A stretch of 62,573 nt of DNA, the filler included, from Bipalium vagum (lineage: Eukaryota): assembly GCA_037834085.1 (NCBI GenBank). It is 3 parts of 3 records of this genome, joined end to end, with 100 filler letters (N's around TTAATTAATTAA, not from the genome) between each part and the next. Parts side by side here need not be neighbours in the genome. Positions count along the whole stretch, not along the records: positions 16,528 to 34,338 come from JBBMKC010049737.1; 2 more parts are not named here. One strand, 5' to 3'. The position numbers and the translations under genes were made by a program. This document shows positions 17,078-29,999 of the stretch, in pieces (within the stretch, counting starts at the first letter, position 1; the number at the start of each line of letters is the position of its first letter). The notes beneath the pieces were generated by a model. That model saw only the letters and a program-made list of their open reading frames with translations, was not told the origin of the DNA and searched no databases.

Positions 17078-17269
17078 TTATATAATTATAAATAAGTCAA
17101 TTGTAATATCAGTTCTCACATCATTTTCTGATCTTTCGGTCACCAACTCTTGTATCGTCTTTGTCGTCTTGGTGGTTTTCTTAGTCCGAGTAATTATTTT
17201 TTTGACTAGATTACCGTGCTCATCGATGTATGACTCCGTTTCAACATTTGGTTCCCCAGTTAAAATTTC
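17078..17269 (-). CDS. Probable last exon, Thr/Lys-rich tail
   Basis: tttag|EILTGEPNVETESYIDEHGNLVKKIITRTKKTTKTTKTIQELVTERSENDVRTDITIDLFIII*. An internal GAT|gtgaga donor could extend the gene further. Confidence 0.7.
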   Translation of the reverse strand, partial: EILTGEPNVETESYIDEHGNLVKKIITRTKKTTKTTKTIQELVTERSENDVRTDITIDLFIII

Positions 17270-20200
17270 CTAAATGTTAACGGATAAAAATAATATTTAA
17301 ATATTCTAAAATTATTGTTTCATTTCAACGTGAACGTACCGTTACTTCCCCATTGGTAACTGTGCGGGTTCCCGTCTTATTGATTATATATTCCGGCTGA
17401 TATGGCGACAATCGTGCATCACTGTCATCAGTCATCTGTGATAATCTTGCATTTTCATGTTGTGTTTCATCTATTGCCATGTTGGAGGATATTCGCTTAG
17501 TCACACTATTGTCACTGTTTTTATCATTAGGCACCACCGGCTGCAAAGAAGGAGAAAAGTGAAAAGATAGAAAATATAAAAAACAATCAAACAATAAAAA
17601 GACCAATCTCAGAAATTAGAAAAGTACTCTTACAATTGTCAATTTTATCTCCTCGGTTTCATCAAGTTTTATGTATGACAAACCTTTCACTTTTCGCTGT
17701 AAAGAAAGTTATTTTCAGACCCAATAATTAATAATCAATCAAACTAACCTCAGGACCTTTTTTGCGTGATTCCTTCATAAATTGCTCTGGAGTGTAGGTC
17801 AGAGGAGTCCAGTCATTCTATATTATTTACAAAATAAATTTTAAACAAAATTTGATTTAAGTACAAAGATAGTAGGTCATGTAAATAATGTAAATAAAAT
17901 GGTCTGTATATTCTACATGATGAACATTAAACGAGTCAAAAGTCATAATTCTACCATGTTTTCCAATTCATAGAAAAACAAATTTACCGACCAAAATATC
18001 GATTCAATACATTAAGTCGAAAAATGGGAAAACACCCATTTCATTTCGTGTAACATTTTCAGCACGGTGTCGAATATATACGTAATATTTTAGGAAAAGA
18101 GGAAAGTTGTTGACCTAATAATTATGGAAAGTTATGAATTTTTTCTAAAACAAGTCAAGATGTTATCTAGAGTTTATTAAAGATAAAAAGTCTAGTCAGA
18201 AAAAAACTAAAAAAAGTTTTTTTCTAGGTTTTAGATATTTCCCATCGAATTATGAATATCCTGTTGATTGATTATTATGTCAATATATCGATTAAGTTCA
18301 GAAAATGTTCAAATTGTCTTTTACAATTTTTTATAAAAGGTTATCTCCATTAGAACCAATTGAACGAATTCTGTTGATTTCTTAGCATAATATCATACCA
18401 CTACCAGCAATAAAAAGATTTTTCTTAAATTGTTAAAATCAATACAGGTTGATGAAGATTTATGTGAGTCTCAAAACTAGAATAATTGTTCTCATAATCC
18501 AAAATTATTGACGCTATGAAAAAATGATAGAAAGATAGATTTATTTTTTTCAATACTCTATATTAAAATAAGAAGAGGTTTCATGCCCATCATTTCATTT
18601 ATTTTTTAATTGTTGAATAATTTGAATCTGTGTTAGAAACAAAATATCCTACTATAGTAAAGTGGTAAATTGTAGCTCCCATTGAACGTTTTAGTATTAA
18701 ATTTCCTTCAAGTTTTCAGTAAATGAATCTGGCTGGTTTGTTTTTTAAAAAAATATCAGAACGAGAACAGTGATAAATAAATTAAAAAGCGGTGAAGAAC
18801 ACTTTCGGGGAATATTTACTTACCCTGTTCAAACAGAAACAGATCAAAATTCGTTCCACTAAGTCAAGATAAAAACGAAAAAATCCGTGTTATTTTCCAT
18901 TTTAGTTTTTTACTAATAATCAAAAAATAAATGGAATTTTAGGGATAGAAATTATATTATTTAGAAAATTAATAATATATTAACATATATGTAAGATAAT
19001 TAACAAAAATTTTAATATTAATTAAAATGCTTCAATAAATTGACTAAATAATAATAACAAAAATCGAGATTCCATCATGAAAACAGAACTTAATTTTTAG
19101 TATCTTTTAAAAGTTTTACAAAACATTAAACAAATTAAATTATACATAATAATATTTAACACAAGAAACAGTTTTGAGGACATTTTATTGATTAAATTAA
19201 ATAGATTTATTTATCATTTCAAAAAAAGAAAATTTGTGAATCAAAACACTTTTGTTTCTTACTATGATTTCGACCTAACAGACTATACGATTAAGTATTA
19301 AAAATTAATAAAAAATAAGTGCAAGCAAAAAATATTGATTGTAAAAGATTTTACGTCGTGCTACAAGGCACACAATACTTTCAATTCTAATCAAAGTTGA
19401 AAATATCAGTTTAGTTATAATTTAAAAGTAAAATCTTACGCCTGGGTAAAATTTGAATGCTTTCTCGCCAAAATTAAATTCCGCTGTGTTTTCTTTAAGA
19501 GACACAGTTGGGAAAAAGGCTGATGGACCGTTTCTCAAGTCAAGAGGAATATTGTAAGCTGGGCCATACATTTCACCATTTAGTGACCATTGGACCTTAC
19601 CCTCATCAAGATCAAGAAAGCAGCCTACTACATCTCCAGCATTGAAAGACTTCATAATTCAGTTAAGAAATGAATAATAAAAAAGGAATATTCCTACTAC
19701 CTTTCCGTAATTTTCTATGTCGTTATTGAACATTTTCTTTCCTTGGTTGCCGTTTAATCCATATCCATCAGGATCTGCACCATATCCCATTCCATATTTA
19801 TCAACTCCCAACTCCAAATTTGCTGCTTCTGTCGACCATCCTACACGCATTAACCCAGAACTTTCTAGCGGACTTGCCTCGTAATAGTATTTTCCACGAC
19901 CTTTAACGCCCTTTATAAATTACATGTAAACAAACGTTGCCATTATTTTTTAAAATTATTTTGTGATAACCTGATAACCTCTCAAAAATTTAGATTTTTT
20001 CAGAAATAATTATTAGCAAATTAAAAAATATCATTAAATTCAGTTGATAATTATCAAGTAGTATGCTTATGGATTACAAGACTCGATTTAATTGTAAAAT
20101 GTTAAAAAATTAAAAATCCTCAATTGATTATTGGATATATTAAAGTAGTATGCAAGTACAGTGAAACCTGCATAAATGAACACCTTTGTTAGCTGAACAC

Positions 20201-29200: not shown

Positions 29201-29999
29201 CCTTTGATGGAAATTGAATCAACAATTACGAATATAATTATCCAGAATGATCAATAAAATATACCTGGGACTTGTTTAGTGATTTTCTTGGTCAGATCCA
29301 GCCAATACTGAAAGTTGTCAATCATTAATTTGGGAATTTTTAAAGAAACTTTAGATTTACCCAAATTTTTGTTCTATCTTTGTAAGTAATTCCAAAATAT
29401 TCCCGTTCATTCAGCTCTAAATAGTCACAAACGGAATCGAACAGGTGCTGACCAAATGAAGCCCTCTGAATGGAAGAGTTTATAGATTTTTATGGAAAAC
29501 AATTCTATATTACATCCAACGAAATCACTTCTTCCAATCCATCTAACATGATCACTAAACATTCAATAAGCTTTCCTGATGGTTTAAAATCCAAAATGCT
29601 CTGAGATTTGGCTCCAGTGTAACCGGATCTCAATGTTCCTGTCATTGTACCAAAGGCAGCATTGGAACCGCCACCAATTCTACTCATACTTCCACCAAGT
29701 CGATTGTCATTCTTTCTCAAGCTCATATAATAATCCTTTTTTGGCAAAGTATCAGTAATTTCAATCGTACCATCTTCCAGTCGATTGACTTGAGTCATGG
29801 ATTCATTGTGGAAATTTATCGATCCATGTGTGGTATCGGCATCAGAATTGTATGAATTGTGATAATCTTCCTTAAAATAATACCAGTAAAAAAACGACAA
29901 AATATATTTTTAAAGATGATTTAAAAATTAATCCATATTTCAATAAAGAAAATCATTACTTAAATTATATACATAAAACATTAAGCTTACTTGATACAT
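17078..29999 (-). CDS. Spliced gene: protein 4.1/EPB41-family FERM protein fused to two tandem DDX1-type SPRY domains (~1056 aa)
   Basis: Hand-built exon chain (minus): 29999-29991, 29870-29514, 29465-29361, 29307-29265, 28132-27829, 27780-27693, 26383-26133, 24453-24275, 24010-23969, 21924-21686, 21438-20830, 19910-19701, 19649-19440, 17817-17749, 17696-17634, 17540-17340, 17269-17078. All introns are GT-AG, the total is 3171 nt, and the frame is kept at every junction. FERM motifs: GQHLFDSVCDYLELNEREYFG, WLDLTKKITKQ, FQVKFYPPE, EDLTRYYLTLQVR, QSEAGDYDP, LALYGLD, FSWARL, VDHHFFFR. SPRY motifs: YYYE, RVGWST, GDVVGCFLDL, FPTVSLK, FNFG. The first exon and exact 3' end are less certain. Confidence 0.8.
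17340..17540 (-). CDS. C-terminal region exon
   Basis: ttctttgcag|PVVPNDK...TGTRTVTNGEVT|gtacgt; matches ORF 17325..17606. Confidence 0.8.
17634..17696 (-). CDS. C-terminal region exon
   Basis: tttacag|RKVKGLSYIKLDETEEIKLTI|gtaaga. Confidence 0.78.
17749..17817 (-). CDS. Exon after SPRY repeat 2
   Basis: tag|NDWTPLTYTPEQFMKESRKKGPE|gttagt; parallels ETWIPVSQA after repeat 1. Confidence 0.82.
19440..19649 (-). CDS. SPRY repeat 2 exon
   Basis: aag|SFNAGDVVGCFLDLDEGKVQWSLNG...FFPTVSLKENTAEFNFGEKAFKFYPG|gtaaga. Confidence 0.92.
19701..19910 (-). CDS. SPRY repeat 2 exon
   Basis: GVKGRGKYYYEASPLESSGLMRVGWSTEAANLELGVDKYGMGYG...ENYGK|gtagta. Confidence 0.92.
20159..20335. mobile_element. Pogo/Tigger-type MITE in a SPRY-region intron
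   Basis: TIRs cagtgaaacctgcataaatgaacacc / ggtgttcaatttaagcaggtttcactg, TA TSD, internal tgaacacct repeats. Confidence 0.88.
20830..21438 (-). CDS. SPRY repeat 1 core and start of SPRY repeat 2
   Basis: GCRSNKGVKAEGEYFYEARVLEDGFVRIGWST...FNFGDSAFVYPP...WKLNPYD...GWQGSRCNK|gtgagt. Confidence 0.93.
21686..21924 (-). CDS. Linker and start of SPRY repeat 1
   Basis: catag|CG GTT; ...LHWRMSPADCTLSLGMDDKGLDVASQPGTGWQ|gtatgt. Confidence 0.85.
23969..24010 (-). CDS. 42-nt symmetric (phase 1-1) linker micro-exon, GWYTLPKNGTLSKE
   Basis: actttttcag acceptor, gtaatt donor, open in the required frame; skipping it also keeps the frame. Confidence 0.6.
24275..24453 (-). CDS. FERM gene exon (FERM-adjacent region)
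   Basis: Phase-2 acceptor tag|A ATG; MIEFGIPKKPNLQPGFHTRKYY...KEPADD G|gtaatt. Confidence 0.8.
26133..26383 (-). CDS. FERM gene exon (F3, PH-like lobe)
   Basis: NAEGEEILLGVYYGGIVLYRQKIRIIRFSWARLIQVSYKKKK...AIVDHHFFFR; matches ORF 26129..26419. Confidence 0.92.
27693..27780 (-). CDS. FERM gene exon (F2/F3)
   Basis: GQTPEEADKNFLDNTRKLALYGLDMHKVK|gttggt. Confidence 0.92.
27829..28132 (-). CDS. FERM gene exon (F1/F2 lobes)
   Basis: DSRLVFEFQVKFYPPE...EDLTRYYLTLQVRQELVCGKLPCS...QSEAGDYDP...HKLHR; matches ORF 27810..28124. Confidence 0.93.
29265..29307 (-). CDS. FERM gene exon (F1 lobe)
   Basis: cag|YWLDLTKKITKQVP+G|gtatat; classic WLD...K.I..Q motif. Confidence 0.9.
29361..29465 (-). CDS. FERM gene exon (F1 lobe)
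   Basis: cag|RASFGQHLFDSVCDYLELNEREYFGITYKDRTKIW|gtaaat; follows a 48-nt intron. Confidence 0.9.
29514..29870 (-). CDS. FERM gene exon: N-terminal extension and start of FERM F1 lobe
   Basis: ttttaag|GAAGAT acceptor; encodes EDYHNS...KLIECLVIMLDGLEEVISLD|gtaata. Confidence 0.85.

Follow-up and report, generated by a model that had tools for sequence, protein, structure and literature searches.

In textbooks, protein 4.1 is the adaptor that couples membrane proteins to the cortical skeleton. The question raised by the locus described here is whether a protein of this type has acquired domains resembling part of an RNA helicase. The DNA comes from the flatworm Bipalium vagum and was examined as one stretch of 62,573 nucleotides joined from three records (the window), of which positions 16528-34338 form the piece analysed. 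Between positions 29798 and 17078 on the minus strand of this piece, exons for a FERM domain precede exons for two SPRY domains similar to that of the helicase DDX1. We conclude that the interval is very probably a single intact protein-coding gene, orthologous to a flatworm-wide subfamily of protein 4.1 into which a pair of SPRY domains has been inserted. This architecture is confirmed as real and conserved, and it is neither unique to this genome nor new to the databases.

One chain of exons joins the FERM and SPRY domains

The piece has a G+C content of 21-34% (mean ~27%), and its long coding signals lie on the minus strand only, where all of the peptides quoted in the original prediction are found at their expected places. 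The gene is divided into 15-16 exons, for which a check of each exon gives AG/GT signals at all borders, matching phases and no stop codon. Coding sequence totals 3045 nt, or 1015 codons from the ATG at 29798 to the TAA at 17080-17078, and a 42-nt micro-exon would extend this to ~1029 codons. The in-frame passage from FERM to SPRY that had been proposed holds, with the donors after 24275 and 23969 and the acceptor before 21924 all in phase 1. Two small tail exons (17817-17749 and 17696-17634), which are revealed by homologues, had been missed in the earlier reading. Searches, the phase check and the tree all used the window exons taken singly, as per-exon translations, and never as a joined protein. 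A Pfam scan run in this manner returns FERM_N, FERM_M and FERM_C plus SPRY in three exons, as the original prediction had anticipated. The exons are as follows.

29514-29798, minus strand: exon 1, from ATG 29798; conserved N-terminal motif (…EDGTIEITDTLPKKDYY…) and start of FERM_N; colinear with relatives by tblastn
29361-29465, minus strand: exon 2, FERM_N (Pfam E 3.9e-10); AG/GT borders, phase 0
29265-29307, minus strand: exon 3, end of FERM_N (weak in Pfam, E 0.045); ends in phase 1
27829-28132, minus strand: exon 4, FERM_M of 4.1 type (Pfam E 1.3e-9)
27693-27780, minus strand: exon 5, end of FERM_M
26133-26383, minus strand: exon 6, FERM_C (Pfam E 9e-18); ends in phase 2
24275-24453, minus strand: exon 7, linker with a degenerate motif resembling the FERM-adjacent region (…PGFHTRKYY…); ends in phase 1
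23969-24010, minus strand: micro-exon of 42 nt (…WYTLPKNG…); phase 1 in and out, possibly alternative
21686-21924, minus strand: exon 8, linker and DDX1-like N-terminal flank of SPRY 1 (…HWRMSPADC…GWQ); 50-60% to relatives by tblastn, fits the family consensus
20830-21438, minus strand: exon 9, SPRY 1 core, conserved inter-SPRY linker and N-terminal flank of SPRY 2 (…WKLNPYDA…); Pfam SPRY E 1.4e-16
19701-19910, minus strand: exon 10, first half of SPRY 2 (Pfam SPRY E 8e-6); 60-63% to the second SPRY of relatives
19440-19649, minus strand: exon 11, second half of SPRY 2 (Pfam SPRY E 5.8e-10); groups with family SPRY 2
17749-17817, minus strand: exon 12, tail; 50-55% over 22 residues by tblastn; AG/GT borders, phase 0
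17634-17696, minus strand: exon 13, tail; 80% over 10 residues by tblastn
17340-17540, minus strand: exon 14, tail, low complexity; its end …TRTVTNGEVT aligns with the family motif TRRVVNGEVV
17078-17269, minus strand: exon 15, tail hairpin motif at 17204-17254 (…ETESYIDEHGNLV…), 65% to P0164 residues 1121-1137; TAA at 17080-17078

When ten family members are placed on the window by tblastn, they align colinearly from 29882 to 17204, passing in order through the N-terminal motif, FERM, linker, SPRY 1, SPRY 2 and tail. Relatives also provide three intron-free contigs from public runs (L001, L002 and L003) that hold a complete open reading frame, of 1217 codons in a 4642-bp contig and of 1088 codons in two ~3.5-kb contigs from two runs. 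These contigs are transcript-like in that they behave as mRNA would, which points to a single transcript in the relatives. In the source run of the window itself, one contig covers 21400-26500 without a gap, and the small number of joints it shows are repeat matches of 20 letters that carry no splice information. Neither the tail exons nor the alternative frames of the intron from 24275 to 21924 yield a Pfam match.

Both ends of the gene permit more than one reading. The N-terminal motif of exon 1 is conserved in 34 family members, and an in-frame acceptor at 29872/29871, upstream of the ATG, leaves room for an upstream 5' exon. In exon 15, a GTGAGA donor after …SEND (~17118) is an alternative to reading on to the TAA. 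This donor suggests that the true last exon is located beyond the contig edge; alternatively, the protein ends at the TAA.

The gene belongs to a family found throughout flatworms

A phmmer search of 1.84 billion representative proteins with the SPRY exon (203 codons) places a group of flatworm FERM-SPRY proteins on top (E 1e-112 to 1e-43), matches much stronger than chance would give. Proteins in this group are ~700-1200 residues long and match far from their N-terminus, and the same chains carry Pfam FERM_N, FERM_M and FERM_C together with two SPRY domains. Colinear proteins with one FERM and two SPRY domains are present in >30 flatworm species, in the free-living Macrostomum as much as in flukes, tapeworms and a monogenean. 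Trematode members come from Schistosoma, Trichobilharzia, Fasciola, Fasciolopsis, Clonorchis, Opisthorchis, Paragonimus, Echinostoma, Dicrocoelium and Calicophoron, and cestode members from Echinococcus, Taenia, Hydatigera, Hymenolepis, Mesocestoides, Schistocephalus, Spirometra and Sparganum. The monogenean is Cichlidogyrus and the free-living species is Macrostomum lignano. Flukes and tapeworms have at least two paralogues (A and B), and some tapeworms have a longer third type (C).

Outside flatworms, no FERM-SPRY protein was found among the 150 best SPRY matches, in which the long ones were checked singly. Among the long matches with a SPRY domain far from the N-terminus, P0035 and P0051 proved to be flatworm members, and P0027, P0029, P0046, P0057 and P0140 were set aside as proteins without a FERM domain. 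Among the best 120 FERM matches, all flatworm proteins have SPRY domains, and none of them has the Pfam C-terminal domain (CTD) of protein 4.1. The layout was seen in Platyhelminthes only. Our survey of proteomes, which the original prediction had called for, upholds a lineage-specific fusion at the level of the phylum but not of this genome, as >30 species, often with two or three paralogues, share it.

Several members have been deposited under vague names. Examples are 'Band 4.1-like protein 3' of Clonorchis (P0164), 'Band 4.1-like protein 2' of Echinococcus (P0172), 'putative 4.1 G protein' (P0166) and 'SPRY domain containing protein' (P0336) of S. mansoni, 'SPRY domain containing protein' of F. 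hepatica (P0177) and BOX15_Mlig026758g1 of Macrostomum lignano (P0250). Other members (P0004, P0007, P0168, P0229, P0334 and P0335) are entered as 'ATP-dependent RNA helicase DDX1' or 'DEAD box helicase 1', a misnaming found in Clonorchis, Cichlidogyrus, S. japonicum and S. haematobium RefSeq. These DDX1 names are wrong because the proteins have no helicase domain, and the name has evidently been carried over from the SPRY match. A full-text literature search found no paper on the flatworm architecture of FERM plus two SPRY domains. The earlier view of an uncharacterised architecture thus stands with respect to the literature, but not with respect to the databases, where it was already deposited for these species.

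The window gene has the same domain order as the deposited proteins and is colinear with them over its full length, sharing the N-terminal, WFTL and tail hairpin motifs. It most resembles the A type (compared with P0164, 57% in FERM_M, 52% in SPRY 1 and 52.5% in SPRY 2), and it is only ~50% identical to any named family member. Alignment by tblastn to two A-type proteins, P0164 and P0005, gives 49-52% for SPRY 1, 44-61% for SPRY 2, 57% for FERM_M and 39-41% for FERM_C. The SPRY domains are shown by these values to be conserved as strongly as the FERM domain, a pattern that we read as probable purifying selection. The closest relatives of the SPRY exon, at 76%, are the short fragments P0002, P0237 and P0238 (ENA, Logan; metagenome or run assemblies). 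The species of the window, or one close to it, is represented in public environmental or host-associated datasets. We regard the window gene as a new, A-like member of a family already present in databases under vague or wrong names.

Among the entries of a proteome of S. mansoni exosome-like vesicles are 'SPRY domain containing protein [Sm]' and also 'Band 4.1-like protein [Sm]' (PMC5818524). If these two entries, which match by name only, correspond to B-type and A-type members, then both would be expressed as protein in adult schistosomes.

A FERM domain of 4.1 type and a probably 4.1-like tail

Compared with all solved structures, the FERM_M exon matches 4.1R (E 1.2e-29) and 4.1B (6e-27) best, followed among other FERM domains by FARP2 (2e-15), PTPN3 (8e-11) and ERM/merlin (~1e-9). 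In the FERM-based protein search, canonical 4.1 proteins (E ~1e-82) come next after the flatworm family. At the level of sequence, the FERM domain of the window gene is confirmed as the 4.1 subtype, in agreement with the original assignment.

Members of the protein 4.1 family, including vertebrate EPB41 and EPB41L1-3, Drosophila Coracle and the mollusc proteins P0318, P0327 and P0330, share with the window family a plan of FERM domain, variable middle and conserved tail. The window family differs by adding two DDX1-type SPRY domains, or ~400 residues, to the middle region. Canonical 4.1 proteins among the FERM matches carry PF08736, PF05902 and often PF04382, but never PF00622, and the statement that such proteins are without SPRY is thereby borne out. 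The mollusc 4.1 proteins among these matches likewise are without the spectrin-actin-binding domain (SAB; PF04382), so this domain is not family-defining outside vertebrates.

Possible traces of the remaining 4.1 plan are seen on both sides of the SPRY pair. A motif resembling the FERM-adjacent (FA) region, which reads P-G-F-H-T-R-K-Y-Y in the window and F-x-[ST]-R-K-Y-H in the family, occupies the position of the canonical 4.1 sequence LGSKFRYSGRT. Comparison of this region with FA by hhalign gives a probability of 99% with FERM_C as an anchor and 2% (E 0.02) without the anchor. Exon 7 closes with …R-K-E-P-A-D-D and the micro-exon reads G-W-Y-T-L-P-K-N-G, which together correspond to …R-K-R-I-S-S-T-D-Q-T-W-F-T-L-P-H-G of the A-type linker, such that the micro-exon has its counterpart in the W-F-T-L-P-H-G motif at the same linker position of A-type relatives.

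At the other end, the last two window exons align with the A-type tail, through T-R-x-V-x-N-G-E-V and then E-T-E-S-x-x-D-E-H-G-x-L-x-K. The tail of relatives continues to an end motif, D-x-A-L-N-x-A-I…T-x-L-D-x-D-x-S-V, for which the canonical CTD end in molluscs offers the comparison D-I-D-H-D-A-L-L-A-E-A-I-K…P-D-L-S-V; the pattern of the match is D-x-a-L-x-x-A-I…P-D-x-S-V. When family tails (n=18) are aligned with canonical 4.1 CTDs (n=12), hhalign reports a probability of 80.5% (E 1.3e-5) over 27 columns at this end motif. The final 13 codons of the window gene before the TAA (VRTDITIDLFIII) are without a counterpart in relatives, and the missing CTD-like end motif may lie beyond the contig edge at 16528.

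Because the tail is colinear with the 4.1-like tail of the family and an FA-like motif follows the FERM domain, the SPRY pair is taken to be an insertion within a 4.1 protein. The original picture of a FERM-SPRY fusion is probably to be amended accordingly, given a tail that is colinear with a family whose members bear a CTD-like end motif. The family is best read as a putative flatworm 4.1 that has received the SPRY pair in the variable region between head and tail.

The SPRY domains are of the DDX1 type

When compared with solved structures, the SPRY exon (exon 9) matches the DDX1 SPRY domain 4XW3 with an E value of 7.8e-31, and the next families are ASH2L (4.8e-8), RanBP9/10 (~1e-7 to 1e-6) and RyR (~1e-5), with SPSB weaker. 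Each repeat covers the whole DDX1 unit, including a flank, W-x-[LM]-[NS]-P-x-D, that precedes the Pfam core, and in repeat 2 the flank W-K-L-N-P-Y-D aligns with W-Q-M-N-P-Y-D of DDX1. The introns of the window gene fall in phase 0 following G-W-Q in SPRY 1, and in phase 0 following C-N-K and N-Y-G-K in SPRY 2. In the protein search, the matches to the SPRY region that rank next after the flatworm family (E ~1e-35) are genuine DDX1 proteins, which carry DEAD and Helicase_C. By sequence comparison, both SPRY domains, flank included, are confirmed as DDX1-type, as had been proposed.

The family differs from DDX1 in that it is without RecA1/DEAD and Helicase_C, and its SPRY domains stand in tandem, whereas DDX1 has a single copy inserted in RecA1. 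No DEAD (PF00270) or Helicase_C (PF00271) domain was detected in any window exon or in 18 full-length family members, which agrees with the reported absence of a DEAD-box motif. A true DDX1 (P0221) coexists with family members P0007 and P0011 in Cichlidogyrus.

DDX1-like SPRY domains were also observed in other non-helicase layouts, namely SPRY with CCCH, La and EF-hand (P0054) and UBC with SPRY and F-box (P0057). Two further proteins, P0027 and P0029, have two and three SPRY domains and derive from genomic contigs. Another protein with two SPRY domains, P0076, is nested inside the DDX1 clade in a quick tree.

A more careful maximum-likelihood tree was built from 62 SPRY units and 208 columns. 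Window SPRY 2 entered the quick tree as two half-length rows and was left out of the careful tree, as were the long branches OUT_P0076 (two rows), OUT_P0057 and OUT_P0100_d2. Both trees omit P0035, P0051 and P0232, which are divergent members of the C type. In the careful tree, window SPRY 1 is located inside the family SPRY-1 clade (support 99/98) and outside both the A and B subclades, and family SPRY 2 is monophyletic with Macrostomum included (86/92). The window SPRY 2 exons group with family SPRY 2 in the quick tree (support 83). DDX1 sequences from cnidarians, arthropods, nematodes, a tardigrade, a flatworm and protists are monophyletic (98/88) in the careful tree, and family SPRY 1 and SPRY 2 join weakly (63/36) beside them. 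Macrostomum SPRY 1, which is highly divergent, is attracted to an outgroup, and a grouping of all family SPRY domains is not rejected (approximately unbiased test, p 0.43). Union of the family SPRY domains with DDX1, relative to RSPRY1-like outgroups, receives 88 in the quick tree (Shimodaira-Hasegawa-like approximate likelihood ratio test) and 75/25 in the careful tree.

Because the family SPRY domains are placed beside and not within the DDX1 clade, direct descent from DDX1 is something we infer. The original term 'DDX1-derived' is in this sense only probable, the tree making the flatworm domains a sister group of a monophyletic DDX1. The simplest history would begin with an ancestral flatworm 4.1 gene that acquired a single DDX1-type SPRY unit in its variable middle. 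Tandem duplication of this unit would have preceded the divergence of Macrostomum from other flatworms, and a later duplication of the whole gene would have produced the A and B (and C) paralogues.

Predicted structure and a possible mechanism

The S. haematobium A-type orthologue P0167 was folded with AlphaFold from an alignment of 34 members. In the resulting model, the FERM domain (~115-405) is confident, and SPRY 1, the linker and SPRY 2 form a continuous block (~560-960) in which the predicted local distance difference test score is mostly 80-93. The 130-residue linker between FERM and the SPRY pair is disordered, and the N-terminal motif and the tail hairpin have only moderate confidence. 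Foldseek searches with this model return 4.1B (EPB41L3) as the best FERM match, at 50% identity, and DDX1 4XW3 as the best SPRY match, with a template modelling score of 0.91, a root-mean-square deviation of 1.7 Å and 36% identity. The confident linker between the SPRY domains suggests that the pair would behave as a rigid tandem.

In the mechanism that we envisage, the FERM domain and probably the tail would act as in other 4.1 proteins, attaching at the cell cortex to lipids and to the cytoplasmic portions of membrane proteins. The rigid SPRY pair, which sits where vertebrate 4.1 carries its spectrin-actin-binding domain, would offer a further surface for protein binding and bring one or two flatworm partners to the cortex.

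Alternative explanations

Several observations weigh against the interpretation given above. The gene's 5' start (at ATG 29798 or in an exon farther upstream) is uncertain, as is its 3' end, and the junctions are drawn from splice signals, phase and homology, the sole public run with this stretch, of unrecorded type, being its genomic DNA source. Pfam returns no FA, SAB or 4_1_CTD domain, either for the window exons at E up to 0.1 or for eight relatives at E up to 10. Taken by itself, the FA-like motif falls short of significance, the CTD match extends over only 27 columns at 80% probability, and the CTD-like end motif of the family was not found within 16528-17130 in any of the three minus-strand frames. 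The tree places the SPRY domains outside DDX1, which leaves DDX1 a probable and not a demonstrated donor. Finally, a binding role for the pair is proposed by analogy with the general role of SPRY domains, and the molecular function of the DDX1 SPRY domain is stated to be unknown (PMC8668186).

These points leave room for other readings of the locus. One is that a 4.1-like FERM gene has a separate two-SPRY gene as its neighbour on the same strand, and that the exons of both join in frame through a coincidence of splice phases. The longest intronic stretch falls in the gap between FERM and SPRY (1.7 kb at 26133-24453 plus 2.0-2.3 kb from 23969/24275 to 21924), and some database entries (P0001, P0168 and P0336) contain the SPRY half only. 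However, these entries are short or flagged as partial, and the same order is found in a single chain in >30 independently annotated species and in the three intron-free contigs. The linker exons at 24453-24275 and 24010-23969 are themselves colinear with the linkers of relatives, and 4.1-like tail elements follow the SPRY domains, leaving the two-gene explanation barely credible. It is also highly improbable that the locus is a decaying or unexpressed pseudogene copy of a functional paralogue elsewhere. No stop codon or frameshift interrupts the 15-16 exons, all splice sites are intact, and identity to distant relatives is as high in the SPRY domains as in FERM. Against this evidence stand the unmatched last 13 codons, a decayed mariner element 2.6 kb upstream and the absence of the CTD-like end motif from the piece, the last of which is adequately explained by the contig edge at 16528.

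Accepting a single 4.1 gene, the source of its SPRY pair can be viewed in another manner. The pair might have come from some other, older lineage of DDX1-like SPRY domains, or from another capturing protein, and not from the DDX1 gene, in which case 'helicase module capture' would be a misnomer. The monophyly of DDX1 to the exclusion of the family domains favours this possibility, as does the occurrence of DDX1-like SPRY domains in other layouts such as those of P0057 and P0054. Yet DDX1 is by far the nearest relative in sequence and fold, including the flank outside the Pfam SPRY core, and a pan-eukaryotic DDX1 is the most economical donor for a fusion that was seen in flatworms only. Fast evolution after capture would also yield the same tree. 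We consider an origin outside the DDX1 gene unlikely, though it deserves to be taken seriously. The suggestion that the SPRY pair ties the cortex to the partners of DDX1 itself, such as the RTCB tRNA-ligase complex or RNA granules, appears improbable. It would be in keeping with the DDX1-type identity of the domains and with the conserved basic patch that was proposed as a putative interaction surface when the DDX1 SPRY structure was reported (PMC4555926). However, human DDX1 436-740, which is without RecA1 and SPRY, still assembles with RTCB, CGI-99 and FAM98B (PMC8668186), and the link to the ligase complex put forward originally loses its footing with the SPRY domain dispensable for that assembly. 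The family SPRY domains have also diverged, to ~36% identity with human DDX1 SPRY, and there is no established partner of the DDX1 SPRY domain from which to transfer a function.

Other sequence features of the piece

An Rfam scan of the piece found no RNA family. A (TTA)n microsatellite of ~25 copies occupies 16528-16601 at the piece edge and may explain why the contig ends there. AT-rich repeats of 10-22 bp are located just past the stop codon, at 16989-17095. Within introns, there are ~9 copies of (ATA)n at 28249-28274, upstream of exon 4 (intron from 29265 to 28132), and ~2.4 copies of a 17-bp unit (TGAACACCTCTGTTAGC, plus strand) at 20177-20216 (intron from 20830 to 19910). More copies of 'ggtgttca' are present near the latter on the minus strand, and the unit may represent a small interspersed repeat.

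The decayed mariner element upstream of the gene is a Mos1-type transposase sequence at 32440-33349 on the minus strand. Its pieces lie in three frames, with HTH_48 at 33349-33155 and DDE at 32843-32610 and 32985-32440, which shows that this copy is frameshifted.

Implications for flatworm biology

A whole animal phylum appears to possess a remodelled protein 4.1 in which a tandem SPRY pair is located between the FERM head and the 4.1 tail. The family probably offers a clean case of domain capture that was followed by tandem duplication and then by duplication of the whole gene. It also opens a second, independent route to finding what the DDX1-type SPRY surface binds, and it flags misleading annotation, in that several members have been deposited as 'DDX1' or 'DEAD box helicase 1'.

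A more far-reaching proposal is that all flatworm 4.1 adaptors carry the SPRY pair, with no canonical 4.1 left, and that the pair is an essential, phylum-specific docking module. Such a module would tie a flatworm-specific partner, possibly an RNA-protein complex engaged through a surface inherited from DDX1, to the cortex at sites such as the syncytial tegument, neurons or protonephridia. We regard this proposal as rather doubtful. If it is true, flukes and tapeworms would have, in a core protein of their cytoskeleton, a feature that their hosts do not possess. As it stands, the SPRY pair is absent from vertebrate 4.1 and present in all sampled flukes and tapeworms, and it therefore represents a parasite-specific feature of a structural protein.

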